Source: Amphiscolops sp. MND2022
Taxonomy: Eukaryota
Assembly: GCA_964187785.1 (NCBI GenBank)
Contig: OZ076412.1
Span: forward strand, 14,694,001-14,758,000
Direction: 5' to 3'
DNA length: 64,000 nt
The translations under genes and the position numbers were made by a program. Below, in pieces: positions 7,059-52,759 of this stretch. Position 1 is the stretch's first letter. Each line of letters opens with the position of its first letter. The notes beneath the pieces were generated by a model. That model was not told the DNA's origin. It made no database searches and saw only the letters and a program-made list of their open reading frames with translations.

Positions 7059-7072
7059 TATCGCACAAATAA

Positions 7073-12586: not shown

Positions 12587-12663
12587 GTTTGTCATTACAA
12601 CCCTTGCTTAGTTTTTTATTTTAAAGAAACTTTTTGTATAAAATGAGCTTTGCTGTTTTTTAG

Positions 12664-17118: not shown

Positions 17119-17240
17119 AAACTCGAGCGAATTGACCTCTCACGCTCATTGACATGGGAGCGACAATTTGGGGCATGGCGAAGATAAGCTTTTTGCCTTC
17201 AAAACAAGAATTTATCCTCCAAAATCAGGATTTTAAGAAA

Positions 17241-21708: not shown

Positions 21709-24700
21709 AAGGATGTTTACCACATTTTTATTCTTTTTACAGAATAACATGATTACCTTACGTCTTACCCCACTGTTGGTTGGCCTTTTCGATCACACAA
21801 TAATCTGAAAAAAATCAATACAAGAAACATTACAAGAACTCTGCTCTACTACTTGGAAGGGAAACAGACCGGGCATGATGCCCAAATTGAGCAGGAGAAC
21901 GTCACGATGAGACCTTAATTGATTGTGAAAATCTTTTGATTTCCGTCAATCAACATACAGTTGATGTAAAATTGCAGCTAAATTCACATTCAATTTTGGA
22001 ACTAAACAATTCTCTTGAAGTGACACTCCATGGTGACATCCTCGAAGCGTAACCTGAAACCGAGTATAAACTGAAGAAATTATTCTGCTTTAATTGAACC
22101 CCGAATTTTATGAAAGCACTTCAAACGTGCAGAAGCTAACGACTATCATGCTTCTTTCAATTTCATTTGTTGAATGATTTGGATGTTTTTGAAAATCCAC
22201 TTGAAAAGGTAGTTAAATGTAGCGTGAAAAACTTTCTACTCGAGGAAAAGACTCTTTGGAAAATCTAGTACAATTCTTGGAGTATTAGTACAGTTTTCAA
22301 GTACTGTTGACAAAAGCTGAATTGCGAGTATTGATTGAGAGTGAAATGAATTTGTGAGAAGGAGCACGTCAAACGTGCCCAGTTGATTCCTAATTCATTT
22401 CATTTGCTACCATATCCTGCAGCGCATTGTAGATATTACAATGTAAGTTGCAAGAAGAGGAAACTTGCCAAACGGCAGGACCCATGAATACAATTTGGGT
22501 TAGTACACTAAAGTCTCATGCAAAAGTTTCTCTCTAGTGCAAATTCTTAGTTTTTGTTTTACTTGGAAGAACAGTGAGGGAAAATCTAATATAAAGGAAT
22601 TGAAGAAACTTGAGCTAACTACGGCGATCGTTGCGCAGGGACCTTTCTCAATTCACATTAAAATACAAATTATCTACAGTTTTCAAGTTTAAAATCGTGA
22701 AAGAGTTGTTTGATACACCCTTGGATAGGTCAATGATTATAATGCACATCGTCGACTTCGTACTCCTCGTTGTTCTTCAATAACTTCTCCAAACAACTGA
22801 AATGGTTATGGAAAGTGCCTAATAAAATGCATTTGACCATTTTTCTTGACTCGAAGATGTTCGTTGGATGGCGCTGCAAAGACCCTTGTGTTGTTCAAGA
22901 TGCGAACAAACGCCGATATTGCGGCAGCTGTTTCCGCTGGAAGAATCGGTTTGTGATATGAATTTGTTGGATAAGGCGATCGTCGTCTCCACCAATGCAG
23001 ATGACGGCGGTATTGAAATCTGCACAGTGCGCTGCGTACCACCACAGATCTTGGGCCTTTAACCAAGAAACTTTTCATCTCGTCATTTCTCCACGAACGT
23101 AGAAGTCCCAGAATTGATGGACCGCATCGCATCATTCGCGCGTCATGACTAGAAACTCTTATTATTGTGCTAAACCAAGTTAATAGATGGATTCGACCAC
23201 TTAAATGAAATGCGAGTTAGAGAAACTTTCGCATAAGGATGTTTACCACAATTTTGATCGTTAACAAAATAACATGATTACCTTACGTCTTACCCCACTG
23301 TTGGTTGGCCTTTTCGATCACACAATAATCTGAAAAAAAATTCCTTCGACCGTCCTGTCAGTATGTAGATTTCAGTTGAAAAGTACGATACATCAAACGG
23401 TCACAGTTCATTGATTTTGTTAATGTAGGTGATTCGAATTATATAGAGTGTAATGGAAACATTACAAGAACCCTGCTCTACTACTTGGAAGTAAAACAGA
23501 CCAGGTATGATGCCCAAATTGAGCAGGAGAACGTCACGATGATACATTAGTTGTGAAAGTCTGTTGATTCCCGTTAATCAACATACAGTTGATGTAAAAT
23601 TGCAGCTAGCTTCATATTCAACTTTGAAACTAAAAAAATTCTCTTGAAGGGACACTCCATGGTGGCATCCTCGAAGCGTAACCTGAGTCCGAATATAAGC
23701 ATTTAGAGAAGTTATTCTGCTTTTAATTGAACCCCGAATTTTATAAAAAGCACTTCAAACGTGCAATAGCTAACGACTATCATGCTTTTCAATTTCTTTT
23801 GTTCAATGATTTGGATGGTATTGAAAATCCACTTGAAAAAAGTTCAATGTAGTGTGAAAAACGTACCACTCGAGGGTAAGACCCTTTAGAAATTCTAGTA
23901 CAATTCTTGGAGTAATAGTACAATTTTCAAATACTGTTAACAAGAGCTGAATTGCGAGTATTGATTAATTGAGATTGAAATGAATTTGTAAGAAGGAGCA
24001 CGTCAAACGTGCCCAGTTGATTCCTCTTCATTTCACTTGGTACCATATCCTGCAGCGCGTTGTAGATATCACAATATAAGTTGCAAGAAAAGGAAACTTC
24101 ACAAACGGCCGGACCCATGAATACAATTCGGGTTAGTACAATATAGCTTCATGCAAAAGGTTCTCCCTAGTACATATTCTAGTCTTTGTATTACTTGAAA
24201 AAACAGTGAGGGAAAATCTAATATAAAGGAATTGAAGAAACTTGAGCTAACTACGACAATCGTTGCGCAGAGACCTTTCTCAATTCACATTAAAATACAA
24301 ATTATCTTAGTAGCGTGAAAAACTTTCTACTCGAGGAAAAGACCCTTTGGAAAATCTAGTACAATTCTTGGAGTATTAGTACAATTTTCAAGTACTGTTG
24401 ACAAGAGCTGAATTGCGAAAATTGATTGAGAGTGAAATGAATTTGTGAGAAGCACCTCAAACGTGCCCAGTTGATTCCTAATTCATTTCATTTGCTACCA
24501 TATCCTGCAGCGCATTGTAGATATCACAATGTAAGTTGCAAGAAAGGAAACTTGCCAAACGGCAGTACCCATGAATACAATTCAGGTTAGTACACTATAG
24601 TCTCGTGCAAAAGTTTCTCCCTAGTGCAAATTCTCAGTTTTTGTATTGCTTGAAAAAACAGTGAGGGAAAATCTAATATAAAGGAATTGAAGAAACTTGA

Positions 24701-27700
24701 GCTAACTACGACAATCGTTGCGCTGGGACCTTTCTCAATTCACATTAAAATACAAATTATCTACATTTTCCAAGTTTAAAATCGCGAAAGAATTATTTGA
24801 TACACTCTTGGATAGGTCAATGATTATAATGCACATAGTCGACTTCGTACTCCTCGTTGTTCTTCATTAACTCCTCCAAACTACTGAAATGGTTATGGAA
24901 AGTGCCTAATAAAATGCTTTTGACAATTTTTCTTGCCTGGAAGATGTTCGCTGCATAGCGCTGCAAAGACCCTTGTGTTGTTCAAGTTGTGAACAAACTC
25001 CGATATTGCGGCAGCAGTTTCCGTTGGAAGAATCGGTTCGTGATATGGATTTGTTGGATAAGGCGATCGTCGTTTCCACTAACGCAGATGACAGCGGTAT
25101 TGAAATTTGCAACGTGCCGTGCGTACCACCACAGATCTTGGGACTTTAACCAAGAAATTTTGAATTCATCTCGTCTTTTCTCCACGAACGTATATGTCCG
25201 GGAATCGATGGCCCGCATCGCATCATTCGCACGTCATGACTATAATCTATTGTGCTAAACCAACTTAATAGGAATCGTCCAATGAAATGAAATGCGAATT
25301 AGAGAAACTAAAACAAACTTACTTTCCAGCACACTTCAAACGTGCAATAGCTAACGACTATCATGCTTCTTTCAATTTCATTTGTTGAATGATTTGGATG
25401 CTATTGAAAAATCCACTTGAAAAAAAGTTCAATGTAGTGTGAAAAACGTACCACTCGAGGGTAAGACCCTTTAGAAATTCTAGTACAATTCTTGGAGTAA
25501 TAGTACAATTTTCAAATACTGTTAACAAGAGCTGAATTGCGAGTATTGATTAATTGAGATTGAAATGAGTTTGTAAGAAGGAGCACGTCAAACGTGCCCA
25601 GTTGATTCCTCTTCATTTCACTTGGTACCATATCCTGCAGCGCGTTGTAGATATCACAATATAAGTTGCAAGAAAAGGAAACTTCACAAACGGCCGGACC
25701 CTTGAATACAATTCGGGTTAGTACGCTATAGCTTCATGCAAAAGTTTCCCCTAGTACACATTCTCAGTCTTTGTATTACTTGAAAAAACAGTGAGGGAAA
25801 ATCTAAAATAAAGGAATTGAAGAAACTTGAGCTAACTACGACAATCGTTGCGCCGGGACCTTTCCCAATTCACATTAAAATACAAATTATCTACAGTTTC
25901 CAAGTTTAAAATCGTGAAAGAATTGTTTGATACTCTTGGATAGGTCAATGATTATGATGCACATAGTCGACTTCGTACTCCTCGTTGTTCTTTATTAACT
26001 CCTCCAAACTACTGAAATGGTTATTGAAAGTGCCTAATAAAATGCTTTTGACCATTTTTCTTGACTCGGAGATGTTCGCTGGATGGCGCTGCAAAGACCC
26101 TTGTGTTGTTCAAGATGTGAACAAACGCTGATATTGCGGCAGCTGTTCCAATTGAACCTCGAACTTCATAAAAGCACACTTCAAACGTGCAATAACTAAC
26201 GACTATCGTGCTTCTTTCAATTTCATTTGTTGAATGATTTGAATGCTGTTAGAAAATCCACTTGAAAAGGTAGTTCAATGTAGCGTGAAAAACGTACCAC
26301 TCGAGGAAAAGACCCTTTAGAAGTTTTAGTACAATTCTTGGAGTAATAGTACAATTTTCAGGTACTGTTGACAAGAGCTGAATTCCGAGTATTGATCAAT
26401 TGAGACTGAAATGAATTTGTGAGAATGAGCACGTCAAACGTGCCCAGTTGATTCCCGATTCATTTCACTTGCTACCATATTCTGCAGCGCTTTGTAGATT
26501 TTACGATGTAAGTTGCGAGAAAAGGAAACTTGCCAAACGGCAGTACCCATGAATACAATTTAGGTTAGTACACTATAGTCTCGTGCAAAAGTTTCTCCCT
26601 AGTGCAAGTTCTTAGTTTTTGTTTTACTTGGAACAGTGAGGGAAATTCTAATATAAAGGAATTGAAGAAACTTGAGCTAACTACGACAATCGTTGCGCAG
26701 GGAGGGACCTTTCTCAATTCACATTAAATTACAAATTATATACAGTTTCCAAGTTTAAAATCGTGAAAGAGTTGTTTGATACACCCTTGGATAGGTCAAT
26801 GATTATAATGCACATCGTCGACTTCGTACTCCTCGTTGTTCTTCAATAACTTCTCCAAACAACTGAAATGGTTATTGAAAGTGCCTAATAAAATGCTTTT
26901 GACATTTTTTTCTTGATTCGAAGATGTTCGTTGGATGGTGCTGCAAAGATCCTCGTGTTGTTCAAGATGTGAACAAACGCCGATATTGCGGCAGCTGTTT
27001 CAATTGAACCTCGAACTTCATAAAAGCACACTTCAAACGTGCAATAACTAACGACTATCATGCTTCTTTCAATTTCATTTGTTGAATGATTTGGATGCTG
27101 TTAGAAAATCCACTTGAAAAGGTAGTTCAATGTAGCGTGAAAAACTTAATACTCGAGGAAAAGACCCTTTAGAAGTTTTAGTACAATTTTCGGAGTAATA
27201 GTACAATTTTCAGGTACTGTTGACAAGAGCTGAATTCCGAGTATTGATCAATTGAGACTGAAATGAATTTGTGAGAAAGAGCACGTCAAACGTGCCCAGT
27301 TGATTCCCGATTCATTTCACTTGCTACCATATCCTGCAGCGCTTTGTAGATTTTACGATGTAAGTTGTGAGAAAAGGAAACTTGCCAATTGGCAGGACCC
27401 ATGAATACAATTCGGGTTAGTACACTATAGCCTCATGCAAAAGTTTCTCCCTAGTACACATTCTCAGTTTTTGTATTACTTGAAAAAACAGTGAGGGAAA
27501 ATCTAATACACAGGGTTTGAAGAAACTTGAGCTAACTACGACAATCGTTGCGCAGGGACTTTTCTCAATTCACAATAAAATACAAATTATCTACAGTTTC
27601 CAAGTTTAAAATCGTGAAAGAATTGTTTGATACACTCTTGGATAGGTCAATGATTATGATGCACATCGTCGACTTCGTACTCTTCGTTGTTCTTTAATAA

Positions 27701-30700
27701 CTCTTCCAAACTACTGAAATGGTTATTGAAAGTTCCTAATAAAATGCTTTCGACAATTTTTCTTGACTCGAAGATGTTCGCTGGATGGCGCTGCAAAGAC
27801 CCTTGTGTTGTTGAAGTTGTGAACAAACTCCGATATTGCGGCAGCTGTTTCCGTTGGAAGAATCGGTTCGTGATATGGATTTGTTGGATAAGGCGATCGT
27901 CGTTTCCACTAACGCAGATGACAGCGGTATTGAAATCGGCAGCGTGCGCTGCGTACCACCACAAATCTTGGGCCTTCAACCAAGAAACTTTTCATCTCGT
28001 CATTTCTCCACGACCGTAGATGTCCGAGAATCGATGGCCCGCATCGCATCATTCGCACGTCATGACTAGAACCTCTTATTGTGCTAAACCAAGTTAATAG
28101 ATGGATTCGACCACTGAAATGAAATGCGAATTAGAGAAACTTTCGCCTAAGGTTGTTTACCACAATTTTGATCGTTAACAAAATAACATGATTACCTTAC
28201 GTCTTACCCCACTGTTGGTTGGCTTTTTCGATCACACAATAATCTGTAAAAAATTCCTTCGACCATCCTGTCAGTATGTAGATTTCAGTTGAAAAGAACG
28301 ATACGTCAAACGGTCACAGTTCATTGATTTTAATATTGTAGGTGATTCGAATTTTATAGAGAGAGTAATGGAAACATTACAAGAACCCTGCTCTACTACT
28401 TGGAATCAAAACAGACCAGGCATGATGCCCAAATTGAACAGGAGAACGTCACGATGATACCTTAGTTGTGAAAGTCTGTTGATTTCCGTTAATCAACATA
28501 TTTGATGTAAAATTGCAGCTAACTTCACATTCAACTTTGAAACTAAAAAAATTCTCTTCAAGTGACACTCCATGGTGACATCCTCGAAGCGTAACCTAAT
28601 GTAAGCGTAGTCCTAATGTAAACATTCAAAGAAATTATTCTGCTTTTAATTGAACCTGGAACTTCATAAAAGCACACTTCAAACGTGCAATAGCTAACGA
28701 CTATCATGCTTCTTTCAATTTCATTTGTTGAATGATTTGGATCCTAATGTAAACATTCAAAGAAATTATTCTGCTTTTAATTGAACCTCGAACTTCATAA
28801 AAGCACACTTCAAACGTGCAATAGCTAACGACTATCATGCTTCTTTCAATTTCATTTGTTGAATGATTTGGATGCTATTAGAAAACCCACTTGAAAAGGT
28901 AGTTCAATGTAGCGTGAAAAAGTTACTACTCGAGGAAAAGACCCTTTAGAAGTTTTAGTACAATTTTTGAGTAATTGTACAATTTTCAGGTACTGTTGAC
29001 AAGAGCTGAATTGCGAGTATTCATCAATTGAGACTGAAATGAATTTGTGAGAAGGAGCACGTCGAACGTGCCCAGTTGATTCCCGATTGATTTCACTTGC
29101 TACCATATCCTGCAGCGCTTTGTAGATTTTACAATGTAAGTTGCGAGAAAATGAAACTTGCCAATCGGCAGGACCCATGAATACAATTCGGGTTAGTACA
29201 CTATAGCCTCATGCAAATGTTTCTCCCTAGTACACATTCTCAGTTTTTGTATTACTTGAAAAAACAGTGAGGGAAAATCTTATATACAGGATTTGAAGAA
29301 ACTTGAGCTAACTACGACAATCGTTGCGCAGGGACCTTTCTCAATTCACATTAAAATACAAATTATCTACAGTTTCCAAGTTTAAAATCGTGAAAGAATT
29401 GTTTGATACACTCTTGGATAGGTCAATTATTATGATGCACATCGTCGACTTCGTACTCCTCGTTTTTCTTTAATAACTCCTCCAAACGATTGAAATGGTT
29501 ATTGAAAGTGCCTAATAAAATGCTTTTGACAATTTTTCTTGATTCGAAGATGTTCGCTGGATGGCGCTGCAAAGACCCTTGTTGTTCAAGTTGTGAACCA
29601 ACTCCGATATTGCGGCAGCTGTTTCCGCTGGAAGAATTGGTTCGTGATATGGATTTGTTGGATAAGGCGATCGTCGTTTCCACCAACGCAGATGACAGCA
29701 GTATTGGAATCGGCAACGTGCGCTGCGTACCATCACAGATCTTGGGACTTTAACAAAGAAATTTTTGAAGAAATCATCTCGTCTTTTCTCCTCGAACGTA
29801 TATGTCCGGGAATCGATGGCCCGCATCGCATCATTCGCACGTCATGACTATATCCTCTTATTGTGCTAAACCAAATTAATAGATGGAATCGTCCGATGAA
29901 ATTAAATGCGAATTAGAGAAACTGGAACAAACTTACTTTCCACCACACTTCAAACGTGCAATAGCTAACGACTATCATGCTTCTTCCAATTTCATTTGTT
30001 GAATGATTTGGATGCTATTGAAAAATCCACTTGAAAATATAGTTCAATGTAGCGTGAAAAACGTACTGTTCGAGGAAAAGACCCTTTAGAAATTTTAGTA
30101 CAATTCTTGGAGTAATAGTACAATTTTAAAGTACTGTTGACAAGAGCTGAATTGCGAGTCATGAATAATTGAGAGCGGAATGAAATTGTGAGAAGGAGCA
30201 CGTCAAACTTGCCCAGTTATTCTTCTTTCATTTCACTTGCTACCATATCCTGCAGCGCATTGTAGATATTACAATGTAAGTTGCAAGAAAAGGAAACTTG
30301 TCAAACGGCAGGACCCATGAATACAATTCGGGTTAGTACACTATAGCCTCATGCAAAAGTTTCTCCTTAGTACACATTCTCAGTTTTTGTATTACTCGAA
30401 ACAACAGTGAGGGAAAATCTAAAATAAAGGATTTGAAGAAACTTGAGCTAACTGCGACAATCGTTGCGCAGGAACCTTTCTCAATTCACATTAAAATACA
30501 AATTATCTAGTTTCCAAGTTTAAAATCGTGAAAGAATTGCTTGATACACTCTTGGATAGGTCAATGATTATAATGCACATCGTCGACTTCGTACTCCTCG
30601 TTGTTCTTTGATAACTCCCCCAAACTACTGAAATGGTTATTGAAAGTGCCTAATAAAATGCTTTTGACAATTTTTTTTGATTCGAAGATGTTCGCTGGAT

Positions 30701-33700
30701 GGCGTTGCAAAGACACTTGTGTTGTTCAAGTTGTGAACCAACTCTGATATTGCGGCAGTTGTTTCCGCTGGAAGAATCGGTTCGTGGTATGGATTTGTTG
30801 GATAAGGCGATCGTCGTTTCCACCAACGCAGATGACAGCAGTATTGGAATCGGCAACGTGCGCTGCGTACCACCACAGATCTTGGGATTTTAACAAAGAA
30901 ATTTTTGAAGAAATCATCCCGTCTCTTCTCCTCGAACGTATATGTCCGGGAATCGATGGCCCGCATCGCATCATTCGCACGTCATGACTATAACCTCTTA
31001 TTGTACTAAACCAAATTAGTAGATGGAATCGTCCGATGAAATTAAATGCGAATTAGAGAAACTGGAACAAACTTACTTTCCACCACACTTCAAACGTGCA
31101 ATAGCTAACGACTATCATGCTTCTTTCAATTTCAATTGTTGAATGATTTGGATGCTATTAGAAAACCCACTTGAAAAGGTAGTTCAATGTAGCGTGAAAA
31201 AGTTACTACTCGAGGAAAAGACCCTTTAGAAGTTTTAGTACAATTTTTGAGTAATTGTACAATTTTCAGGTACTGTTGACAAGAGCTGAATTGCGAGTAT
31301 TCATCAATTGAGACTGAAATGAATTTGTGAGAAGGAGCACGTCAAACGTGCCCAGTTGATTCCCGATTGATTTCACTTGCTACCATATCCTGCAGCGCTT
31401 TGTAGATTTTACAATGTAAGTTGCGAGAAAATGAAACTTGCCAATCGGCAGGACGCATGAATACAATTCGGGTTAGTACACTATAGCCTCATGCAAATGT
31501 TTCTCCCTAGTACACATTCTCAGTTTTTGTATTACTTGAAAAAACAGTGAGGGAAAATCTAATATACAGGATTTGAAGAAACTTGAGCTATCTACGACAA
31601 TCGTTGCGCAGGGACCTTTCTCAATTCACATTAAAATACAAATTATCTACAGTTTCCAAGTTAAAAATCGTGAAAGAATTGTTTGATACACTCTTGGATA
31701 GGTCAATGATTATGATGCACATCGTCGACTTCGTACTCGTTGTTCTTTGATAACTCCCCCAAACTACTGAAATGGTTATTGAAAGTGCCTAATAAAATGC
31801 TTTTGACAATTTTTTTTGATTCGAGGATGTTCGCTGGATGGCGTTGCAAAGACACTTGTGTTGTTCAAGTTGTGAACCAACTCTGATATTGCGGCAGTTG
31901 TTTCCGCTGGAAGAATCGGTTCGTGATATGGATTTGTTGGATAAGGCGATCGTCGTTTCCACTAACACAGATGACAGCAGTATTGGAATCGGCAACGTGC
32001 GCTGCGTACCACCACAGATCTTGGGACTTTAACAAAGAAATTTTTGAAGAAATCATCTCGTCTTTTCTTTTCGAACGTATATGTCCGGGAATCGATGGCC
32101 CGCATCGCATCAATCGCACGTCATGACTATAACCTCTTATTGTACTAAACCAAATTAGTAGATGGAATCGTCCGATGAAATTAAATGCGAATTAGAGAAA
32201 CTGGAACAAACTTACTTTCCACCACACTTCAAACGTGCAATAGCTAACGACTATCATGCTTCTTTCAATTTCAATTGTTGAATGATTTGGATGCTATTAG
32301 AAAACCCACTTGAAAAGGTAGTTCAATGTAGCGTGAAAAAGTTACTACTCGAGGAAAAGACTCTTTAGAAGTTTTAGTACAATTTTTGAGTAATTGTACA
32401 ATTTTCAGGTACTGTTGACAAGAGCTGAATTGCGAGTATTCATCAATTGAGACTGAAATGAATTTGTGAGAAGGAGCACGTCAAACGTCCCCAGTTGATT
32501 CCCGATTGATTTCACTTGCTACCATATCCTGCAGCGCTTTGTAGATTTTACAATGTAAGTTGCGAGAAAATGAAACTTGCCAATCGGCAGGACGCATGAA
32601 TACAATTCGGGTTAGTACACTATAGCCTCATGCAAATGTTTCTCCCTAGTACACATTCTCAATTTTTGTATTACTTGAAAAAACAGTGAGGGAAAATCTA
32701 ATATACAGGATTTGAAGAGACTTGAGCTATCTACGACAATCGTTGCGCAGGGACCTTTCTCAATTCACATTAAAATACAAATTATCTACAGTTTCCAAGT
32801 TAAAAATCGTGAAAGAATTGTTTGATACACTCTTGGATAGGTCAATGATTATGATGCACATCGTCGACTTCGTACTCCTCGTTGTTCTTTAATAACTCCT
32901 CCAAACGATTGAAATGGTTATTGAAAGTGCCTAATAAAATGCTTTTGACAATTTTTCTTGACTCGAAGATGTTCGCTGGATGGCGCTGCAAAGACCCTTG
33001 TGTTGTTCAAGTTGTGAACCAACTCCGATATTGCGGCAGCTGTTTCCGCTGGAAGAATTGGTTCGTGATATGGATTTGTTGGATAAGGCGATCGTCGTTT
33101 CCACTAACGCAGATGACAGCGGTATTGAAATCTGCAACGTGCGGTGCGTACCACCACAGATCTTGGGACTTTAACCAAGAAATTTTGAATTCATCTCGTC
33201 TTTTCTCCACGAACGTATATGTCCGGGATTCGATGGCCCGCATCGCATCATTCGCCCGTCATGACTATAATATATTGTGCTAAACCAACTTAATAGGAAT
33301 CGTCCAATGAAATGAAATGCGAATTAGAGAAACTAAAACAAACTTACTTTCCATCACACTTCAAACGTGCAATAACTAACGACTATCATGCTTCTTTCAA
33401 TTTCAATTGTTGAATGATTTGGATGCTACTAGAAAACCCACTTGAAAAGGTAGTTCAATGTAGCGTGAAAAAGGTACTACTCGAGGAAAAGACCCTTTAG
33501 AAGTTTTAGTACAATTTTTGAGTAATTGTACAATTTTCAGGTACTGTTGACAAGAGCTGAATTGCGAGTATTCATCAATTGAGACTGAAATGAATTTGTG
33601 AGAAGGAGCACGTCAAACGTGCCCAGTTGATTCCCGATTGATTTCACTTGCTACCATATCCTGCAGCGCTTTGTAGATTTCACAATGTAAGTTGCGAGAA

Positions 33701-39700: not shown

Positions 39701-42700
39701 CATTAACTCCTCCAAACTACTGAAATGGTTATTGAAAGTGCCTAATAAAATGCTTTTGACAATTTTTCTTGACTCGAAGATGTTCGCTGGATGGCGCTGC
39801 AAAGACCCTTGTGTTGTTCAAGTTGTAAACAAACTCCGATGTTGCGGCAGCTGTTTCCGTTGGAAGAATCGGTTCGTGATATGGATTTGTTGGATAAGGC
39901 GATCGTCGTTTCCACTAACGCAGATGACAGCGGTATTGAAATCTGCAACGTGCGGTGCGTACCACCACAGATCTTGGGACTTTAACCAAGAAATTTTGAA
40001 TTCATCTCGTCTTTTCTCCACGAACGTATATGTCCGGGAATCGATGGCCCGCATCGCATCATTCGCACGTCATGACTATAATCTATTGTGCTAAACCAAC
40101 TTAATAGGAATCGTCCAATGAAATGAAATGCGAATTAGAGAAACTAAAACAAACTTACTTTCCAGCACACTTCAAACGTGCAATAGCTAACGACTATCAT
40201 GCTTCTTTCAATTTCATTTGTTGAATGATTTGGATGCTATTGAAAAATCCACTTGAAAAAAGTTCAATGTAGCGTGAAAAACGTACCACTCGAGGAAAAG
40301 ACCCTTTAGAAATTCTAGTACAATTCTTGGAGTAATAGTACAATTTTCAAGTACTGTTGACAAGAGCTGAATTGCGAGTATTGATCAATTGAGAGTGAAA
40401 TGAATTTGTAAGAAGGAGCACGTCAAACGTGCTCAGTTGATTCCTCTTCATTTCACTTGGTACCATATCCTGCAGCGTGTTGTAGATATTACAATATAAG
40501 TTGCAAGAAAAGGAAACTTCCCTAACGGCCGGACCCATGAATACAATTCGGGTTAGTACACTATAGCTTCATGCAAAAGTTTCTCCCTAGTACACATTCT
40601 CAGTCTTTGTATTACTTGAAAAAACAGTGAGGGAAAATCTAAAATAAAGGATTTAAAGAAACTTGAGCTAACTACGACAATCGTTGCGCAGGGACCTTTC
40701 TCAATTCACATTAAAATACAAATTATCTACATTCTCCAAGTTTAAAATCGTGAAAGAATTAATTGATACACTCTTGGATAGGTCAATGATTATAATGCAC
40801 GTAGTCGACTTCGTCTTCCTCGTTGTTCTTCATTAACTCCTCCAAACTACTGAAATGGTTATTGAAAGTGCCTAATAAAATGCTTTTGACAATTTTTCTT
40901 GACTCGAAGATGTTCGCTGGATGGCGCTGCAAAGACCCTTGTTGTTCAAGTTGTAAACAAACTCCGATGTTGCGGCAGCTGTTTCCGTTGGAAGAATCGG
41001 TTCGTGATATGGATTTGTTGGATAAGGCGATCGTCGTTTCCACTAACGCAGATGACAGCGGTATTGAAATCTGCAACGTGCGGTGCGTACCACCACAGAT
41101 TTTGGGACTTTAACCAAGAAATTTTGAATTCATCTCGTCTTTTCTCCACGAACGTCTATGTCCGGGAATCGATGGCCCGCATCGCATCATTCGCACGTCA
41201 TGACTATAATCTATTGTGCTAAACCAACCTAATAGGAATCGTCCAATGAAATGAAATGCGAATTAGAGAAACTGAAACAAACTTACTTTCCAGCACACTT
41301 CAAACGTGCAATAGCTAACGACTATCATGCTTCTTTCAATTTCATTTGTTGAATGATTTGGATGCTATTGAAAAATCCACTTGAAAAAAGTTCAATGTAG
41401 CGTGAAAAACGTACCACTCGAGGAAAAGACCCTTTAGAAATTCTAGTACAATTCTTGGAGTAATAGTACAATTTTCAAGTACTGTTGACAAGAGCTGAAT
41501 TGCGAGTATTGAATAATTGAGAGTGAAATGAATTTGTAAGAAGGAGCACGTCAGACGTGCCCAGTTGATTCCTATTCATTTCACTTGGTACCATATCCTG
41601 CAGCGCGTTGTAGATATTACAATATAAGTTGCAAGAAAAGGGAACTTCCCAAACGGCCGGACCCATGAATACAATTCGGGTTAGTACACTATAGCTTCAT
41701 GCAAAAGTTTCTCCCTAGTACACTTTCTCAGTCTTTGTATTACTTGAAAAAACTGAGGTAAAATCTAATATAAAGGAATTGAAGAAGCTTGAGCTAACTA
41801 CGACAATCGTTGCGCAGGAACCTTTCTCAATTCACATTAAAATACAAATTATCTACATTTTCCAAGTTTAAAATCGTGAAAGAATTATTTGGTACACTCT
41901 CGGATAGGTCAATGATTATAATGCACATAGTCGACTTCGTACTCCTCGTTGTTCTTTATTAACTCCTCCAAACTACTGAAATGGTTATTGAAAATGCCTA
42001 GTAAAATGCTTTTGACCGTTTTTCTTGACTCGAAGATGTTCGCTGGATAGCGCTGCAAAGACCCTTGTGTTGTTCGAGTTGTGAACAAACTCCGATATTG
42101 CGGCAGCTGTTTCCGTTGGAAGAATCGGTTCGTGATATGGATTTGTTGGATAAGGCGATCGTCGTTTCCACTAACGCAGATGACAGCGGTATTGAAATCT
42201 GCAACGTGCGGTGCGTACCACCACAGATCTTGGGACTTTAACCAAGAAATTTTGAATTCATCTCGTCTTTTCTCCACGAACGTATATGTCCGGGATTCGA
42301 TGGCCCGCATCGCATCATTCGCCCGTCATGACTATAATATATTGTGCTAAACCAACTTAATAGGAATCGTCCAATGAAATGAAATGCGAATTAGAGAAAC
42401 TAAAACAGACTTACTTTCCATCACACTTCAAACGTGCAATAACTAACGACTATCATGCTTCCTTCAATTTCATTTGTTGAATGATTTGGATGCTATTGAA
42501 AAATCCACTTGAAAGAAAGTTCAATGTAGCGTGAAAAACGTACCACTCTAGCATAAGACCCTTTAGAAATTCTAGTACAATTCTTGGAGTAATAGTACAA
42601 TTTTCGAGTACTGTTGACAAGAGCTGAATTGCGAGTATTGATTAATTGAGATTGAAATGAATTTGTAAGAAGGAGCACGTCAAACGTGCTCAGTTGATTC

Positions 42701-45700
42701 CTCTTCATTTCACTTGGTACCATATCCTGCAGCGCGTTGTAGATATCACAATATAAGTTGCAAGAAAAGGAAACTTCACAAACGGCCGGATCCATGAATA
42801 CAATTCGGGTTAGTACAATATAGCTTCATGCAAAAGTTTCTCCCTAGTACACATTCTAGTCTTTGTATTACTTGAAAAACAGTGAGGAAAAATCTAATAT
42901 AAAGGAATTGAAGAAACTTGAGCTAACTACGACAATCGTTGCGCTGGGACCTTTCTCAATTCACATTAAAATACAAATTATCTACATTTTCCAAGTTTAA
43001 AATCGCGAAAGAATTATTTGATACACTCTTGGATAGGTCAATGATTATAATGCACATAGTCGACTTCGTACTCCTCGTTGTTCTTCATTAACTCCTCCAA
43101 ACTACTGAAATGGTTATGGAAAGTGCCTAATAAAATGCTTTTGACAATTTTTCTTGACTGGAAGATGTTCGCTGCATGGCGCTGCAAAGACCCTTGTGTT
43201 GTTCAAGTTGTGAACAAACTCCGATATTGCGGCAGCTGTTTCCGTTGGAAGAATCGGTTCGAGATATGGATTTGTTGGATAAGGCGATCGTCGTTTCCAC
43301 TAACGCAGATGACAGCGGTATTGAAATTTGCAACGTGCCGTGCGTACCACCACAGATCTTGGGACTTTAACCAAGAATTTTTGAATTCATCTCGTCTTTT
43401 CTCCACGAACGTATATGTCCGGGAATCGATGGCCCGCATCGCATCATTCCCCCGTCATGACTATAATCTATTGTGCTAAACCAACTTAATAGGAATCGTC
43501 CAATGAAATGAAATGCGAATTAGAGAAACTAAAATAAACCAACTTAATAGGAATCGTCCAATGAAATGAAATGCGAATTAGAGAAACTAAAACAAACTTA
43601 CTTTCCAGCACACTTCAAACGTGCAATAGCTAACGACTATCATGCTTCTTTCAATTTCATTTGTTGAATGATTTGGATGCTATTGAAAAATCCACTTGAA
43701 AAAAAGTTCAATGTAGTGTGAAAAACGTACCACTCGAGGGTAAGACCCTTTAGAAATTCTAGTACAATTCTTGGAGTAATAGTACAATTTTCAAATACTG
43801 TTAACAAGAGCTGAATTGCGAGTATTGATTAATTGAGATTGAAATGAATTTGTAAGAAGGAGCACGTCAAACGTGCCCAGTTGATTCCTCTTCATTTCAC
43901 TTGGTACCATATCCTGCAGCGCGTTGTAGATATCACAATATAAGTTGCAAGAAAAGGAAACTTCACAAACGGCCGGACCCATGAATACAATTCGGGTTAG
44001 TACAATATAGCTTCATGCAAAAGTTTCTCCCTAGTACACATTCTAGTCTTTGTATTACTTGAAAAAACAGTGAGGGAAAATCTAAAATAAAGGAGTTGAA
44101 GAAACTTGAGCTAACTACGACAATCGTTGCACAGGGACCTTTCTCAATTCACATTAAAATACAAATTATCTACATTTTCCAAGTTTAAAATCGCGAAAGA
44201 ATTATTTGATACACTCTTGGATAGGTCAATGATTATAATGCACATAGTCGACTTCGTACTCCTCGTTGTTCTTCATTAACTCCTCCAAACTACTGAAATG
44301 GTTATGGAAAGTGCCTAATAAAATGCTTTTGACAATTTTTCTTGACTGGAAGATGTTCGCTGCATGGCGCTGCAAAGACCCTTGTGTTGTTCAAGTTGTG
44401 AACAAACTCCGATATTGCGGCCGCAGTTTCCGTTGGAAGAATCGGTTCGTGATATGGATTTGTTGGATAAGGCGATCGTCGTTTCCACTAACGCAGATGA
44501 CAGCGGTATTGAAATTTGCAACGTGCCGTGCGTACCACCACAGATCTTGGGACTTTAACCAAGAAATTTTGAATTCATCTCGTCTTTTCTCCACGAACGT
44601 ATATGTCCGGGAATCGATGGCCCGCATCGCATCATTCGCACGTCATGACTATAATCTATTGTGCTAAACCAACTTAATAGGAATCGTCAAATGAAATGAA
44701 ATGCGAATTAGAGAAACTAAAACAAACTTACTTTCCAGCACACTTCAAACGTGCAATAGCTAACGACTATCATGCTTCTTTCAATTTCATTTGTTGAATG
44801 ATTTGGATGCTATTGAAAAATCCACTTGAAAAAAAGTTCAATGTAGTGTGAAAAACGTACCACTCGAGGATAAGACCCTTTAGAAATTCTAGTACAATTC
44901 TTGGAGTAATAGTACAATTTTCAAATACTGTTAACAAGAGCTGAATTGCGAGTATTGATTAATTGAGATTGAAATGAATTTGTAAGAAGGAGCACGTCAA
45001 ACGTGCTCAGTTGATTCCTCTTCATTTCACTTGGTACCATATCCTGCAGCGCGTTGTAGATATCACAATATAAGTTGCAAGAAAAGGAAACTTCACAAAC
45101 GGCCGGACCCATGAATACAATTCGGGTTAGTACAATATAGCTTCATGCAAAAGTTTCTCCCTAGTACACATTCTAGTCTTTGTATTACTTGAAAAAACAG
45201 TGAGGGAAAATCTAATATAAAGGAATTGAAGAAACTTGAGCTAACTACGACAATCGTTGCGCTGGGACCTTTCTCAATTCACATTAAAATACAAATTATC
45301 TACATTTTCGAAGTTTAAAATCGCGAAAGAATTATTTGATACACTCTTGGATAGGTCAATGATTATAATGCACATAGTCGACTTCGTACTCCTCGTTGTT
45401 CTTCATTAACTCCTCCAAACTACTGAAATGGTTATGGAAAGTGCCTAATAAAATGCTTTTGACAGTTTTTCTTGACTGGAAGATGTTCGCTGCATAGCGC
45501 TGCAAAGACCCTTGTGTTGTTCAAGTTGTGAACAAACTCCGATATTGCGGCAGCAGTTTCCGTTGGAAGAATCGGTTCGTGATATGGATTTGTTGGATAA
45601 GGCGATCGTCGTTTCCACTAACGCAGATGACAGCGGTATTGAAATTTGCAACGTGCCGTGCGTACCACCACAGATCTTGGGACTTTAACCAAGAAATTTT

Positions 45701-48700
45701 GAATTCATCTCGTCTTTTCTCCACGAACGTATATGTCCGGGAATCGATGGCCCGCATCGCATCATTCGCACGTCATGACTATAATCTATTGTGCTAAACC
45801 AACTTAGTAGGAATCGTCCAATGAAATGAAATGCGAATTAGAGAAACTAAAACAAACTTACTTTCCAGCACACTTCAAACGTGCAATAGCTAACGACTAT
45901 CATGCTTCTTTCAATTTCATTTGTTGAATGATTTGGATGTTATTGAAAAATCCATTTGGAAATAGTTCAATGTAGCGTGAAAAACGTACCACTCGAGGAA
46001 AAGACCCTTTAGAAATTCTAGTACAATTCTTGGAGTAATAGTACAATTTTCAAGTACTGTTGACAAGAGCTGAATTGCGAGTATTGATTGAGAGTGAAAT
46101 GAATTTGTAAGAAGGAGCACGTCAAACATGCCCAGTTGATTCCTCTTCATTTCACTTGGTACCATATCCTGCAGCGCGTTGTAGATATTACAATGTAAGT
46201 TGCAAGGAAACTTCCCAAACGGCCGGACCCATGAATACAATTCGGGTTAGTACAATATAGCTTCATGCAAAAGTTTCTCCCTAGTACTCATTCTCAGTCT
46301 TTGTATTACTTGAAAAAACAGTGAGGGAAAATCTAATATAAAGGAATTGAAGAAGCTTGAGCTAACTACGACAATCGTTGCGCAGGGACCTTTCTCAATT
46401 CACATTAAAATACAAATTATCTACATTTTCCAAGTTTAAAATCGTGAAAGAATTATTTGGTACACTCTCGGATAGGTCAATGGTTATAATGCACATAGTC
46501 GACTTCGTACTCCTCGTTGTTCTTTAATAACTACTCCAAACTACTGAAATGGTTATTGAAAGTGCCTAATAAAATGCTTTTGACCATTTTTCTTGACTCG
46601 AAAATGTTCGCTGGATGGCGCTGCAAAGACCCTTGTGTTGTTCAAGTTGTGAACAATCTCCGATATTGCGGCAGCTGTTTCCGTTGGAAGAATCGGTTCG
46701 TGATATGGATTTGTTGCATAAGGCGATCGTCGTTTCCACTAACGCAGATGACAGCGGTATTGAAATTTGCAACGTGCCGTGCGTACCACCACAGATCTTG
46801 GGACTTTAACCAAGAAATTTTGAATTCATCTCGTCTTTTCTCCACGAACGTATATGTCCGGGAATCGATGGCCCGCATCGCATCATTCGCACGTCATGAC
46901 TATAATCTATTGTGCTAAACCAACTCAATAGGAATCGTCCAATGAAATGAAATGCGAATTAGAGAAACTAAAACAAACTTACTTTCCACCACACTTCAAA
47001 CGTGCAATAGCTAACGACTATCATGCTTCTTTCAATTTCATTTGTTGAATGATTTGGATGCTATTGAAAAATCCACTTGAAAAAAAGTTCAATGTAGTGT
47101 GAAAAACGTACCACTCGAGGGTAAGACCCTTTAGAAATTCTAGTACAATTCTTGGAGTAATAGTACAATTTTCAAATACTGTTAACAAGAGCTGAATTGC
47201 GAGTATTGATTAATTGAGATTGAAATGAATTTGTAAGAAGGAGCACGTCAAACGTGCCCAGTTGATTCCTCTTCATTTCACTTGGTACCATATCCTGCAG
47301 CGCGTTGTAGATATCACAATATAAGTTGCAAGAAAAGGAAACTTCACAAACGGCCGGACCCATGAATACAATTCGGGTTAGTACAATATAGCTTCATGCA
47401 AAAGTTTCTCCCTAGTACACATTCTAGTCTTTGTATTACTTGAAAAAACAGTGAGGGAAAATCTAATATAAAGGAATTGAAGAAACTTGAGCTAACTACG
47501 ACAATCGCTGCGCTGGGACCTTTCTCAATTCACATTAAAATACAAATTATCTACATTTTCGAAGTTTAAAATCGCGAAAGAATTATTTGATACACTCTTG
47601 GATAGGTCAATGATTATAATGCACATAGTCGACTTCGTACTCCTCGTTGTTCTTCATTAACTCCTCCAAACTACTGAAATGGTTATGGAAAGTGCCTAAT
47701 AAAATGCTTTTGACAGTTTTTCTTGACTGGAAGATGTTCGCTGCATAGCGCTGCAAAGACCCTTGTGTTGTTCAAGTTGTGAACAAACTCCGATATTGCG
47801 GCAGCAGTTTCCGTTGGAAGAATCGGTTCGTGATATGGATTTGTTGGATAAGGCGATCGTCGTTTCCACTAACGCAGATGACAGCGGTATTGAAATTTGC
47901 AACGTGCCGTGCGTACCACCACAGAGCTTGGGACTTTAACCAAGAAATTTTGAATTCATCTCGTCTTTTCTCCACGAACGTATATGTCCGGGAATCGATG
48001 GCCCGCATCGCATCATTCGCACGTCATGACTATAATCTATTGTGCTAAACCAACTTAGTAGGAATCGTCCAATGAAATAAAATGCGAATTAGAGAAACTA
48101 AAACAAACTTACTTTCCAGCACACTTCAAACGTGCAATAGCTAACGACTATCATGCTTCTTTCAATTTCATTTGTTGAATGATTTGGATGTTATTGAAAA
48201 ATCCATTTGGAAAAAGTTCAATGTAGCGTGAAAAACGTACCACTCGAGGAAAAGACCCTTTAGAAATTCTAGTACAATTCTTGGAGTAATAGTACAATTT
48301 TCAAGTACTGTTGACAAGAGCTGAATTGCGAGTATTGATTGAGAGTGAAATGAATTTATAAGAAGGAGCACGTCAAACATGCCCAGTTGATTCCTCTTCA
48401 TTTCACTTGGTACCATATCCTGCAGCGCGTTGTAGATTTTACAATGTAAGTTGCAAGGAAACTTCCCAAACGGCCGGACCCATGAATACAATTCGGGTTA
48501 GTACAATATAGCTTCATGCAAAAGTTTCTCCCTAGTACTCATTCTCAGTCTTTGTATTACTTGAAAAAACAGTGAGGGAAAATCTAATATAAAGGAATTG
48601 AAGAAGCTTGAGCTAACTACGACAATCGTTGCGCAGGGACCTTTCTCAATTCACATTAAAATACAAATTATCTACATTTTCCAAGTTTAAAATCGTGAAA

Positions 48701-50258
48701 GAATTATTTGGTACACTCTCGGATAGGTCAATGGTTATAATGCACATAGTCGACTTCGTACTCCTCGTTGTTCTTTAATAACTACTCCAAACTACTGAAA
48801 TGGTTATTGAAAGTGCCTAATAAAATGCTTTTGACCATTTTTCTTGACTCGAAAATGTTCGCTGGATGGCGCTGCAAAGACCCTTGTGTTGTTCAAGTTG
48901 TGAACAATCTCCGATATTGCGGCAGCTGTTTCCGTTGGAAGAATCGGTTCGTGATATGGATTTGTTGGATAAGGCGATCGTCGTTTCCACTAACGCAGAT
49001 GACAGCGGTATTGAAATTTGCAACGTGCCGTGCGTACCACCACAGATCTTGGGACTTTAACCAAGAATTTTTGAATTCATCTCGTCTTTTCTCCACGAAC
49101 GTATATGTCCGGGAATCGATGGCCCGCATCGCATCATTCCCCCGTCATGACTATAATCTATTGTGCTAAACCAACTTAATAGGAATCGTCCAATGAAATG
49201 AAATGCGAATTAGAGAAACTAAAACAAACTTACTTTCCAGCACACTTCAAACGTGCAATAGCTAACGACTATCATGCTTCTTTCAATTTCATTTGTTGAA
49301 TGATTTGGATGCTATTGAAAAATCCACTTGAAAAAAAGTTCAATGTAGTGTGAAAAACGTACCACTCGAGGGTAAGACCCTTTAGAAATTCTAGTACAAT
49401 TCTTGGAGTAATAGTACAATTTTCAAATACTGTTAACAAGAGCTGAATTGCGAGTATTGATTAATTGAGATTGAAATGAATTTGTAAGAAGGAGCACGTC
49501 AAACGTGCCCAGTTGATTCCTCTTCATTTCACTTGGTACCATATCCTGCAGCGCGTTGTAGATATCACAATATAAGTTGCAAGAAAAGGAAACTTCACAA
49601 ACGGCCGGACCCATGAATACAATTCGGGTTAGTACAATATAGCTTCATGCAAAAGGTTCTCCCTAGTACATATTCTAATCTTTGTATTACTTGAAAAAAC
49701 AGTGAGGGAAAATCTAATATAAAGGAATTGAAGAAACTTGAGCTAACTACGACAATCGTTGCGCAGAGACCTTTCTCAATTCACATTAAAATACAAATTA
49801 TCTACATTTTCCAAGTTTAAAATCGTGAAAGAATTATTTGTTACACTCTTGGATAGGTCAATGATTATAATGCACATAGTCGACTTCGTACTCCTCGTTG
49901 TTCTTTATTAACTCCTCCAAACTACTGAAATGGTTATCGAAAGTGCCTAATAAAATGCTTTTGACAATTTTTCTTGACTCGAAGATGTTCGCTGGATGGC
50001 GCTGCAAAGACCCTTGTGTTGTTCAAGTTGTGAATAAACTCCGATATTGCGGCAGTTGTTTCCGCTGGAAGAATCGGTTCGTGATATGGATTTTTTGGAT
50101 AAGGCGATCGTCGTTTCCACCAACGCAGATGACAGCGGTATTGAAATCGACAACGTGCGCTGCGTACCACCACAAATCTTGGGCCTTTAACCGAGAAACT
50201 TTTCATCTCGTCATTTCTCCACGAACGTAGAAGTCCCAGAATCGATGGCCCGCATCGC
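21709..50258. repeat. Tandem array (macrosatellite-like), ~25 units: mostly 1121-1142 bp, with ~1.64-kb long and ~0.85-kb short variants at the left end
   Basis: The anchor CACTTCAAACGTGC recurs about 25 times (22117, 23751, 25332, 26177, 27029, 28675 ... 49243), and near-identical ORFs recur at about 1.13-kb spacing in the ORF track. Confidence 0.97.
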
Positions 50259-52510
50259 ATCATTCGCGCGTCATGACTAGAAACTCTTATTATTGTGCTA
50301 AACCAAGTTAATAGATGGATTCGACCACTTAAATGAAATGCGAGTTAGAGAAACTTTCGCATAAGGATGTTTACCACAATTTTGATCGTTAACAAATTAA
50401 CATGATTACCTTACGTCTTACCCCACTGTTGGTTGGCCTCTTCGATCATACAATAATCTTAAAAAAATCCTTCGACCGTCCTGTCAGTATGTAGATTTCA
50501 GTTGAAAAGAACGATACGTCAAACGGTCACAGTTCATTGATTTTGTTAATGTAGGTGATTCGAATTATATAGAGAGAGTAATGGAAACATTCGTGATATG
50601 GATAACATTCGTAATTGGTTCGTGATATGGATTTGTTGGATGAGGCGATCATCGTTTCCGCCAACGCAGTTGACGACGGTATTGAAATCTGCAACGTGCT
50701 CTGCGTACCACCACAGGTCTTTGGCCTTTAACCCCAGAAGTTCTTTTGCAGAATTCATCTCGTGTTTTCTCCACGAACGTATATGAATTTATCTTGATAA
50801 GTGAAATCTTGATAAATTTAGGATCTGAAAAATAACCTTTTCAACGAGTTGACATCAATGGAATATTCAAAAAGGCAAAATCCTTGGAAAATTTTTCCGC
50901 AAATCAATTCCTTATTTTGAACAATGCGTCTGTTTTTGGAAACTTTTGCAAATATGTGACGTGTCTCACATGCATAGGCGAAGAATTAAATAAGTGAAAA
51001 CTCAAATTACAAGAAACTGAATTAGATACAGCTTGAAAAGAGAAATAATGTAAATAAAATAATGTGGCATCCATCAATGACGACCTTTGGTTCACAACAT
51101 TATCAACTGATACCTAGATCTGCATAGGCTGTTCGGCATTTTTTGGCTAACAAAAGTTACTTGGGAGCGTTTAATTTTAACAGTCAAGCAACCACGCGTT
51201 TTCAAAAGTAGCCCGATCTCGGTGGGAAAAAATCATTAGCTGATTGGACTCCTTCCAGTTTCCAAATGTCAATGAGTGGGCAGTTTTTTTGGTCATAACT
51301 TGAGGTCGGCACTTGTTTGTGTTTCAACTTAATGTATTCTACAATTCTTCCACAGTACGTTATCATGTTTTGTACCGTTTTCTCATCATTCGCGCGTCAT
51401 GACTAGAAACTCTTATTATTGTGCTAAACCAAGTTAATAGATGGATTCGACCACTTAAATGAAATGCGAGTTAGAGAAACTTTCGCATAAGGATGTTTAC
51501 CACAATTTTGATCGTTAACAAAATAACATGATTACCTTACGTCTTGCCCCACTGTTGGTTGGCCTTTTCGATCACACAATAATCTGAAAAAAAATCCTTC
51601 GACCGTCCTGTCAGTATGTAGATTTCAGTTGAAAAGAACGATACGTCAAACGGTCACAGTTCATTGATTTTGTTAATGTTGGTGATTCGAATTATATAGA
51701 GAGAGTAATAGAAACATTCGTGATATGGATAACATTCGTAATTGGTTCGTGATATGGATTTGTTGGATGAGGCGATCATCGTTTCCGCCAACGCAGATGA
51801 CGACGGTATTGAAATCTGCAACGTGCTCTGCGTACCACCACAGGTCTTGGGCCTTTAACCCCAGAAGTTCTTTTGCAGAATTCATCTCGTGTTTTCTCCA
51901 CGAACGTATATGAATTTATCTTGATAAGTGAAATCTTGATAAATTTAGGATCTGAAAAATAACCTTTTCAACGAGTTGACATCAATGGAATATTCAAAAA
52001 GGCAAAATCCTTGGAAAATTTTTCCGCAAATCAATTCCTTATTTTGAACAATGCGTCTGTTTTTGGAAACTTTTGCAAATATGTGACGTGTCTCACATGC
52101 ATAGGCGAAGAATTAAATAAGTGAAAACTCAAATTACAAGAAACTGAATTAGATACAGCTTGAAAAGAGAAATAATGTAAATAAAATAATGTGGCATCCA
52201 TCAATGACGACCTTTGGTTCACAACATTATCAACTGATACCTAGATCTGCATAGGCTGTTCGGCATTTTTTGGCTAACAAAAGTTACTTGGGAGCGTTTA
52301 ATTTTAACAGTCAAGCAACCACGCGTTTTCAAAAGTAGCCCGATCTCGGTGGGAAAAAATCATTAGCTGATTGGACTCCTTCCAGTTTCCAAATGTCAAT
52401 GAGTGGGCAGTTTTTTGGTCATAACTTGAGGTCGGCACTTGTTGGTGTTTCAACTTAATGTATTCTACAATTCTTCCACAGTACGTTATCATGTTTTGTA
52501 CCGTTTTCTC
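50259..52510. repeat. Two-copy 1126-bp tandem duplication (50259-51384, 51385-52510) at the array edge
   Basis: ORFs 50546/51673 and 50904/52031 repeat at an offset of 1127. The junction is TTTTCTC|ATCATTCGCGCG. Confidence 0.93.
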
Positions 52511-52759
52511 AGCGAAACGTCATTTGAAATGAAGTGGAAGACGTTTTTGTCATCAAATAACGACCATTTCCCGCTCTGTTCGGTGTTTTAATTCAACCTA
52601 AGTGTGCATCGCGGTGTTATTCGAGAATCCCTGCAGAATAGAGCTGAACGCGGGCGCTTTCTTACCAATTCTTTGCATGTAAAACAATAGAAACTATACT
52701 CTTTGTGCCTTGGTAACTTTTAGAATAGTTTATTTTGGCTCAAAACGTCATTTTTGAAC

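Follow-up and report, generated by a model that had tools for sequence, protein, structure and literature searches.

A kilobase-unit tandem array in a UPF1 intron of Amphiscolops derives from a segment of a decayed Helitron-like element

We describe a tandem array of about 27 head-to-tail units in the genome of Amphiscolops sp. MND2022 (GCA_964187785.1, 1.07 Gb). The array lies inside a decayed Helitron-like rolling-circle transposon, and this element as a whole sits within an intron of UPF1, antisense to the gene. The sequence analysed is a stretch of 64,000 nt (C4:14694001-14758000, contig OZ076412.1); we call it the window, and coordinates given without a contig are positions in it. The array takes up 21708..52511 on the minus strand, and its unit corresponds to the last exon of an accessory gene of the SGNH/GDSL esterase type plus the spacer towards the RepHel frame of the transposon. 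We consider it likely that a dead copy of the element, a founding duplication and stepwise exchange in place together account for what is seen.

The array and the element it belongs to

A comparison of the window with itself by BLAST gives direct similarity that is about 23-fold across 21708-52511, and none on the opposite strand across the array. The period is mostly 1130-1140 bp. Adjacent units are 91-99% alike, and the identity over all units ranges from 88 to 99.6%. When the array is cut with one reference unit, most units measure 1.13 kb, with variants of 0.85, 1.5 and 1.8 kb, and 22 are near full length. The presence of a tandem array in the window is thus confirmed, and an earlier note on this DNA, made from the sequence alone, was right in placing it at 21709-52510, with about 25 units of 0.85-1.64 kb. 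Note that Tandem Repeats Finder, run with a longest period of 500, left the array itself undetected and reported only small internal duplications.

The origin of the unit becomes clear from its occurrence elsewhere. When the whole genome is searched with one unit, single copies with 74% identity to it are found at C4:77.16 Mb and C1:71.60 Mb. Both loci are intact elements of 14,090 bp, 99.57% identical to each other, in which the unit lies between the 5' terminal region and a RepHel frame of 2545 amino acids (aa). In the sense orientation the unit covers approximately positions 1244-2361 (basic form) or 1244-2878 (long form) of the 14,090, and the RepHel frame starts at 3023. In the plus orientation of the intact element, which we use below for alignments and junctions, the units run from 11213 or 11730 to 12817 or 12847. 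The earlier note had named, as a check, the search for intact copies with the unit once and upstream of Rep, and these two loci are such copies; its proposal that an internal part of a single rolling-circle element was amplified is thereby supported. With head-to-tail units of about 1 kb and a monomer homologous to a single-copy part of a transposable element (TE), the array has the make-up of a TE-derived macrosatellite.

To either side of the array, window and intact element are colinear. On the minus strand, 14295-14406 corresponds to intact positions 5-119 (the 3' terminal region with its hairpin-rich end, by local alignment), 16359-17213 to 579-1442 (the remnant of the 3' accessory region, blastn, 75%) and 52742-53257, beyond the array, to 13318-13902 (the single-copy 5' region, by blastn and local alignment). 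Between these, 17681-21813 corresponds to 6606-11310 and holds what is left of RepHel (17677..21622, minus strand; tblastn with the intact RepHel). This remnant comprises aa 1-1489 with the HUH Rep domain, whose motif GALPHIHTVLW is found near 18.1-18.3 kb; it is 80% identical in nucleotides to the intact copies and is broken by at least 34 stops and several frameshifts. The array begins 86 bp past its end (21622), still colinear with the intact element. From this colinearity we conclude that a single decayed element, about 39 kb long and on the minus strand, extends from 14295 to about 53257 and encloses the array. The minus-strand Rep remnant that the earlier note had seen at 17.7-21.7 kb is real; the array, however, does not lie at the 5' side of the element, as the note had it, but in its interior, with the 5' region resuming at 52742-53257.

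The element is damaged in several further places. At 17214..17680 (minus strand) we find the junction of an internal deletion of about 5.2 kb: intact positions 1442-6606 have no counterpart in the window, and RepHel aa 1490-2545, that is the PIF1 helicase and the GIY-YIG domain, are lost. Beyond 53257, about 190 bp of the extreme 5' end, which would include the 5' hairpin and the terminal 8-mer, can no longer be recognised; this 8-mer, CTRGGTGG, is absent from the whole window. None of ten stop-to-stop pieces of the Rep remnant has a match in Pfam, so that its identity is established only through the intact relatives. The 3' accessory remnant contains a homologue of a 157-aa open reading frame (orf157; 16751-17197, minus strand, 63-93% aa identity by tblastn). 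Next to it, 14407-16358 in the 3' region of the element does not align to the intact relatives, and this part includes a 22-bp tandem repeat (6.7 copies, 85% matches, 16031-16178). Scans of the window for Rfam families and for tRNAs gave no match.

The coding part of the unit corresponds to a 168-aa open frame at sense positions 1313-1816 of the intact element. This frame has no start codon ahead of its conserved block IIIGDSHV, and homologues on C6 also keep the block upstream of their first methionine, which indicates that the frame is the last exon of a spliced gene; the upstream exons are outside the unit. In the intact exon, the motifs IIIGDSHV, GISGL, GGND and DNVH correspond to the SGNH blocks I (GDS), II (G), III (GxND) and V (DxxH), and an alignment of 16 proteins conserves all four (GDS(H/Y)V, G.SGL, GGND and DxVH). 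Seven of the 16 match Lipase_GDSL in Pfam (best E 2.4e-6), and the profile of the alignment matches a solved GDSL protein, PDB 7ddy, with E 1.5e-5. The 168-aa exon alone gives a weak match to Lipase_GDSL_2 (E 0.036), and Atlas puts it beside clusters of GDSL lipases (0.95). The full HMMER search found 14 relatives, and a word-based protein search found one, at 95%. An AlphaFold model of the exon, made from an alignment of six rows, was too poor for use (pLDDT 38). Judged by its motifs and profile matches, the coding part of the unit comes from an SGNH/GDSL hydrolase.

In the array this exon is broken. Relative to the intact exon, all 22 full units have frameshifting indels at codons 16, 69, 103, 116 and 155, and they contain stops as well. 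The earlier note had read the unit as a broken protein on the minus strand, that is as a decayed coding segment, and the homology to the esterase exon together with the shared frameshifts and the stops bears this out. One could still think of a working tandem cluster of esterase genes, since the parent frame is intact in the relatives and some of the copies on C6 have open frames. Yet every full unit carries the five frameshifts, which refute this idea; on either strand, no open reading frame of a unit has a Pfam match above the gathering score (best E 0.018), and the upstream exons are missing from the unit. We regard a working cluster as next to impossible.

The reads that we used were produced in four runs from a single sample, which is probably that of the assembly, and they exist as short contigs. 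Contigs of this kind bridge the left junction of the array (21544-21772) at single-copy word depth, and in all four runs the word depth of array contigs is about 10 times that of the flank. These data are consistent with a real multi-copy array, and they are not independent of the assembly or of the array length in it. Potentially, the array could be an assembly artefact, resulting from collapsed or over-expanded repeats or from a mis-join, and the fact that the sequence is held only by the runs of this one sample, as short contigs, is in favour of such an error. On the other hand, the differences between the units, 0.4-12%, have a structured pattern, both flanks are colinear with the intact element, and the window does not contain a single N; together with the bridged junction and the depth of the array contigs, this makes an artefact very improbable.

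Growth of the array

The order of the units, all on the minus strand, shows how heterogeneous the array is. It starts with a unit of the long type (21708..23227, 1.5 kb), the most divergent of all and colinear with the RepHel remnant. Two units of 1.08 and 1.02 kb and two truncated units of 0.85 kb each (25330..27026) come after it, followed by one full unit (27027-28141) and a long unit of 1.8 kb (28142..29943), which has a junction of element positions 12817 and 11213 and an internal duplication of 131 bp. Both long units hold about 0.5 kb beyond the basic unit. Eighteen basic units of 1.13 kb then occupy 29944..50355, in a block of 12 (29944-43545) and a block of six (43609-50355) that are divided by a partial duplication of 84 bp (43535-43618). 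At the right edge there are two rearranged units of 1.13 kb (50356..52511), which also include intact-element positions 12886-13145.

Three types of junction occur between the units. The long junction, from element position 12817 to 11213, is found four times (near 23230, 28143, 50358 and 51484), and the basic junction, from 12847 to about 11730, approximately 19 times; the third type belongs to the rearranged units of the right edge. The left edge of the array, 21708, is itself element position 11213. None of the junctions contains the terminal 8-mer of the element.

The divergence of the units tells us about their relative age. The distance (Kimura two-parameter, K2P) between the consensus of the units and the intact relative is 0.32, compared with 0.023-0.081 between the units and their own consensus and 0.004-0.139 between one unit and another; hence the units coalesce long after their split from the active lineage. 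In a maximum-likelihood tree the units form strongly supported clades whose members are interleaved along the array, and the unit pairs 44739/45869 and 46990/48120 indicate a duplication of two units at once. A nested and interleaved genealogy of this kind argues for repeated unequal exchange or slippage and not for a single burst. The five frameshifts common to all full units mean that the ancestor from which the units descend already had a dead exon.

From these observations we infer the following course of events. A copy of the Helitron-like rolling-circle transposon would have inserted antisense into the UPF1 intron and then died, losing 5.2 kb with the helicase and the nuclease and accumulating stops in its frames. 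Later, an illegitimate duplication may have joined element positions 12817 and 11213 and so doubled a 5'-proximal segment of 1.6 kb, consisting of the already broken last esterase exon and the spacer up to RepHel. A derivative shorter by 0.5 kb, that is the unit of 1.13 kb, would then have become the main unit. The array would have grown to about 27 units through repeated rounds of unequal exchange between sister chromatids or of slippage during replication, each adding one, two or more units, and this would have gone on until recently. The amplification in situ that the earlier note had proposed is well supported by the shared frameshifts, the shallow coalescence, the nested tree and the lack of the terminal 8-mer; it is still a conclusion drawn from the pattern of the units.

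An alternative is that the element's own rolling-circle replication made the array. A template without a terminator would have given a 5'-proximal concatemer, which integrated as an array, and exchange would only have reshuffled it later. The model of Xiong, Dooner and Du (2016), as far as it is summarised in PMC12628747, has a lost terminator, repeated copying and an over-amplification of 5' sequences, and the segment amplified in the window is indeed 5'-proximal (sense positions from about 1244 to 2878 of 14,090). The family of the carrier clearly forms head-to-tail chains: around both intact copies (C4:77133500-77173499 and C1:71593000-71632999) the 8-mer CTRGGTGG occurs 10 times per 40 kb and on one strand only, where about 1.2 are expected. 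It bounds same-strand, head-to-tail elements of 1.07, 1.26, 1.98, 3.07 and 14.09 kb, with one 8-mer common to each joint, which suggests either rolling-circle concatemers or insertion beside the element's own end sequence. Two predicted proteins from another assembly, P0002 and P0006 (see below), also hint at units elsewhere.

The signature of such concatemers is, however, missing from the array. According to the summary of the model, every unit should include a 5' terminus, so that an array would have many 5' ends but only a single 3' end; the units of the window have neither the 5' terminus nor the 8-mer. In addition, the junctions are of several types and some units are truncated, the tree of the units is nested and not star-like, the exon was broken by five frameshifts before the units diverged, and no other array-bearing copy of the window's subfamily was found in the genome. 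We therefore prefer growth in place after insertion, which we think probable, to a rolling-circle concatemer formed at transposition, which appears unlikely.

A second alternative puts the cause into the esterase cassette. It may be prone to amplification by itself, or may be a small mobile module that inserts next to its own copies, with the Helitron-like host being incidental. At C6:18510305-18533794 there is another tandem array, 23.5 kb long, with four units of 4.05 kb followed by four of 2.1-2.35 kb; it consists of homologues of the esterase exon with about 50% aa identity, some of them with open frames, and neither RepHel nor the terminal 8-mer is found within 40 kb of it. Clusters of such homologues are also present on C9, C5, C12, C8 and C11, at C6:21.09 Mb and at C4:38.5 Mb, compared to about 17 singletons. 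Against this, the units of the window and of C6 share only the coding part (68-70%), nothing notable in the way of hairpins, palindromes or direct repeats is seen in the unit, and the junction positions differ both within the window and between loci; in the sequences compared, we saw neither non-coding sequence nor a hairpin or a junction in common that would account for the recurrence. We judge an intrinsic property of the cassette to be improbable as the cause of the array.

The C6 array also bears on a point on which the earlier note had made its own reading depend, namely that the unit should not occur elsewhere unlinked to a Rep. The unit proper (at 74% nucleotide identity) was found only within RepHel-bearing elements, in agreement with that reading; the distant homologues of its esterase frame on C6 have no RepHel within 40 kb.

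We further observed, at C9:53795797-53810339, a 190-bp match to the RepHel remnant of the window and, at a distance of about 4 kb, at least 10 decayed pieces of the esterase exon, which are 0.8-1.7 kb apart and on the same strand. A search with the N-terminus of RepHel gave no match at C9:53.80 Mb. By these coordinates alone, another dead element may lie here, again one in which part of the esterase gene was amplified.

Several points weigh against growth in place by exchange, the explanation we favour. Through gene conversion an old array may appear young, and a single broken version of a unit may spread through it, so that neither the shared frameshifts nor the shallow coalescence strictly proves that the array grew after the insertion. 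P0002 and P0006 are encoded on one contig of 50.5 kb in another public assembly in the European Nucleotide Archive (ENA). They have 61-64% aa identity to the units of the window and share a frameshift after GGND; they resemble two distinct decayed units of the subfamily found in the window, and there may be a related array in that assembly. The lesion after GGND, and perhaps a small array, may thus predate the UPF1 locus. Esterase cassettes have also been amplified at other loci, a recurrence for which plain chance exchange is no explanation. Finally, the evidence is limited to the assembly of one individual and to short contigs.

A more general claim would be that the SGNH-esterase cassette is a recurrent seed of kilobase tandem arrays in the Amphiscolops genome, whatever its mobile carrier. 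We hold this to be rather doubtful. If it were true, the cassette would have an intrinsic amplification-prone property or be a self-copying module, and the array in the window would be one case of a general process. If the amplification of esterase cassettes is not random, the mechanism behind TE-derived macrosatellites becomes directly testable.

The carrier lineage and the host gene

The family of the carrier codes for an SGNH/GDSL esterase gene, a giant RepHel with a GIY-YIG end and small 3' open reading frames. In the intact RepHel we find Helitron_like_N at aa 1235-1341 (E 4e-8, motif GALPHIHAVIW), a PIF1 helicase at aa 1932-2091 (E 2e-6) and, at the C-terminus, a GIY-YIG domain (22.8 bits, with a cut-off of 22.6). 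The order of an HUH Rep followed by a PIF1-type helicase, as expected for Helentrons, is thus present in the intact relative, and the copy in the window retains only the Rep part. A match to Helraiser (7lcc) is confined to the helicase part (E 1.5e-6).

The earlier note had called the carrier a Helentron, and we had to reject this label. Tested against the criteria for Helentron/HLE2 elements, which include DUF6570 as a proposed marker of HLE2 (PMC11417382), the intact relatives have GIY-YIG instead of an AP endonuclease: neither the RepHel of 2545 aa nor its C-terminal 266 aa matches Exo_endo_phos. RepHel aa 1-1215 has no match to any Pfam family at E<=1, DUF6570 included; the 42 matches to DUF6570 in the genome are all at other loci, none of them in the listed RepHel-GIY-YIG frames. 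HLE2 elements are expected to have terminal inverted repeats of 12-16 nt, with a 3' stem-loop behind the right one, and to insert between T and T. The intact relatives have no terminal inverted repeats of at least 9 nt, the longest inverted match between the 5' and 3' ends being 8 nt and subterminal, and a T|T target is not seen at the flanks. The hairpins at both ends of the intact elements are the sole trait that resembles Helitron2. On the other side, the intact elements do not have the 5'-TC, the 3'-CTRR and the A|T flanks of canonical Helitrons (HLE1) either. Their ends form an 8-bp direct repeat, CTGGGTGG; three independent 5' junctions begin with CTRGGTGG, and the 3' end reads ..CTTCTGGGTGG and has a terminal hairpin. 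The hairpin core CCACG-N5-CGTCGA is absent from the family and from the window.

GIY-YIG is found inside approximately 37 other giant frames of 1,700-2,850 aa, which are the same frames as the RepHel matches wherever the loci can be compared, and this indicates that the fusion of RepHel and GIY-YIG is a stable trait of a large lineage. Candidate loci number at least 560, with concentrations at C1:71-76.5 Mb and C2:102-104 Mb; the RepHel frames are intronless and measure 2,300-2,850 aa, for example at C4:77.15 Mb. The lineage is very abundant and apparently active in the Amphiscolops genome. In the literature that we searched it is little described, with its RepHel-GIY-YIG fusion, its esterase gene, its 8-bp terminal direct repeats and its head-to-tail chains: there is one mention of GIY-YIG in a Helitron-like element, a moss family, and no mention of a GDSL gene in Helitrons. 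One relative of the esterase, P0014 (383 aa), is a fusion protein with a 2OG-Fe(II) oxygenase domain (E 3.8e-29), a domain that is almost exclusive to HLE2-type elements (PMC11417382).

The host gene can be identified as UPF1 by its zinc-binding domain and its SF1 helicase core, which are colinear with human UPF1 on both sides of the intron. The window begins shortly after the UPF1_Zn_bind exons; AAA_12 helicase exons lie within it, on the plus strand, at 11109-11270 and 12662-12991. The exon before the intron (12662..13006, plus strand) belongs to the helicase core, matches residues 476-590 of human UPF1 (2xzo_A, phmmer E 1.9e-55; Pfam AAA_12) and ends with GNPKVLSK, followed by a GT donor at 13007. 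The intron itself (13007..53875, plus strand) has 40,869 bp, is in phase 0 and is bordered by GT..AG, with GTAAGA after 13006 and a T-rich tract before the acceptor AG. The next exon, which is single-copy in the genome, lies in an open frame at 53876..54415 (plus strand; QPLWNQLLHHFKESKVLVEG...), starts with QPLWNQLL and matches residues 591-622 of 2xzo_A (E 2e-6). These borders and the alignments on both sides agree with the position of the array that the earlier note had given, antisense within a UPF1 intron.

Nearby introns of UPF1 measure about 1-3.6 kb. Without the element (14295-53257) the present intron would be about 1.9 kb long, like the adjacent ones. The array is non-coding, and the sole effect that is demonstrated is the lengthening of the UPF1 intron from about 2 kb to 41 kb. 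An essential gene thus tolerates a twentyfold growth of one of its introns through antisense repeat DNA.

Two side observations concern the surroundings of UPF1 and a partial copy of it. A RepHel-like frame, 1284 aa and open (C4:14644852-14645913), lies about 49 kb upstream of the window; the neighbourhood of UPF1 therefore contains more than one element of the RepHel-GIY-YIG lineage. A second set of UPF1 zinc-binding exons on C3 (C3:3777786-3779394) is a partial duplicate, with stops and with the zinc-binding exons only. It is located between the RepHel-GIY-YIG frames C3:3744977-3749173 and C3:3789182-3793423, and may have been captured or carried by a Helitron-like element.

Comparison with known systems

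Tandem repeats inside rolling-circle transposons are known from the non-autonomous Helentron or Helitron elements Cg_HINE of Crassostrea gigas (PMC7492417) and DINE-1/DINE-TR1 of Drosophila (PMC4067079), which have satellite-like, non-coding central repeats of about 100-200 bp. As in the window, these repeats can expand to longer arrays, and the host genome is rich in such elements. They are, however, found in many dispersed non-autonomous copies, whereas the window has a unit of 1.13 kb, made from an accessory gene of a copy of the autonomous type, at a single locus; moreover, the carrier in the window does not have the features of a Helentron.

Arrays of truncated Helitrons in plants, as far as they are described in the summary of Xiong, Dooner and Du (2016) in PMC12628747 (the study is also cited in bioRxiv 10.1101/2024.11.21.624632), resemble the array in the window by their excess of 5'-proximal sequence and their single 3' end. 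They have many 5' termini according to that summary, whereas the units described here have no terminus and no 8-mer, several kinds of junction and a stepwise genealogy.

Small SGNH/GDSL accessory domains of similar size are encoded by retroelements, namely in ORF1 of long interspersed nuclear elements (LINEs) of the CR1/L2 type (PDB 4c1b) and in the Terminons of rotifers (PMC6431247). The match of our esterase profile to 4c1b is weak (E 0.15). In contrast to these cases, the esterase described here is carried by a rolling-circle DNA transposon.

A parallel is also given by satellite DNAs that derive from internal or coding parts of transposable elements (PMC12628747), in which a dead segment such as gag, pol or the central part of a DNA transposon becomes a monomer through duplication and unequal exchange. 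What differs is the source segment, which is new (an SGNH esterase exon of a RepHel-GIY-YIG element), the kilobase size of the unit and the location in an intron of an essential gene. As a TE-derived macrosatellite, the array belongs to a kind already known, of which it is a clear example, though not a very unusual one. Its value lies in how well the birth of a satellite from a transposon is resolved, as the parent, the founding junctions, the shorter unit and the duplications of one and two units can all be read at one locus.

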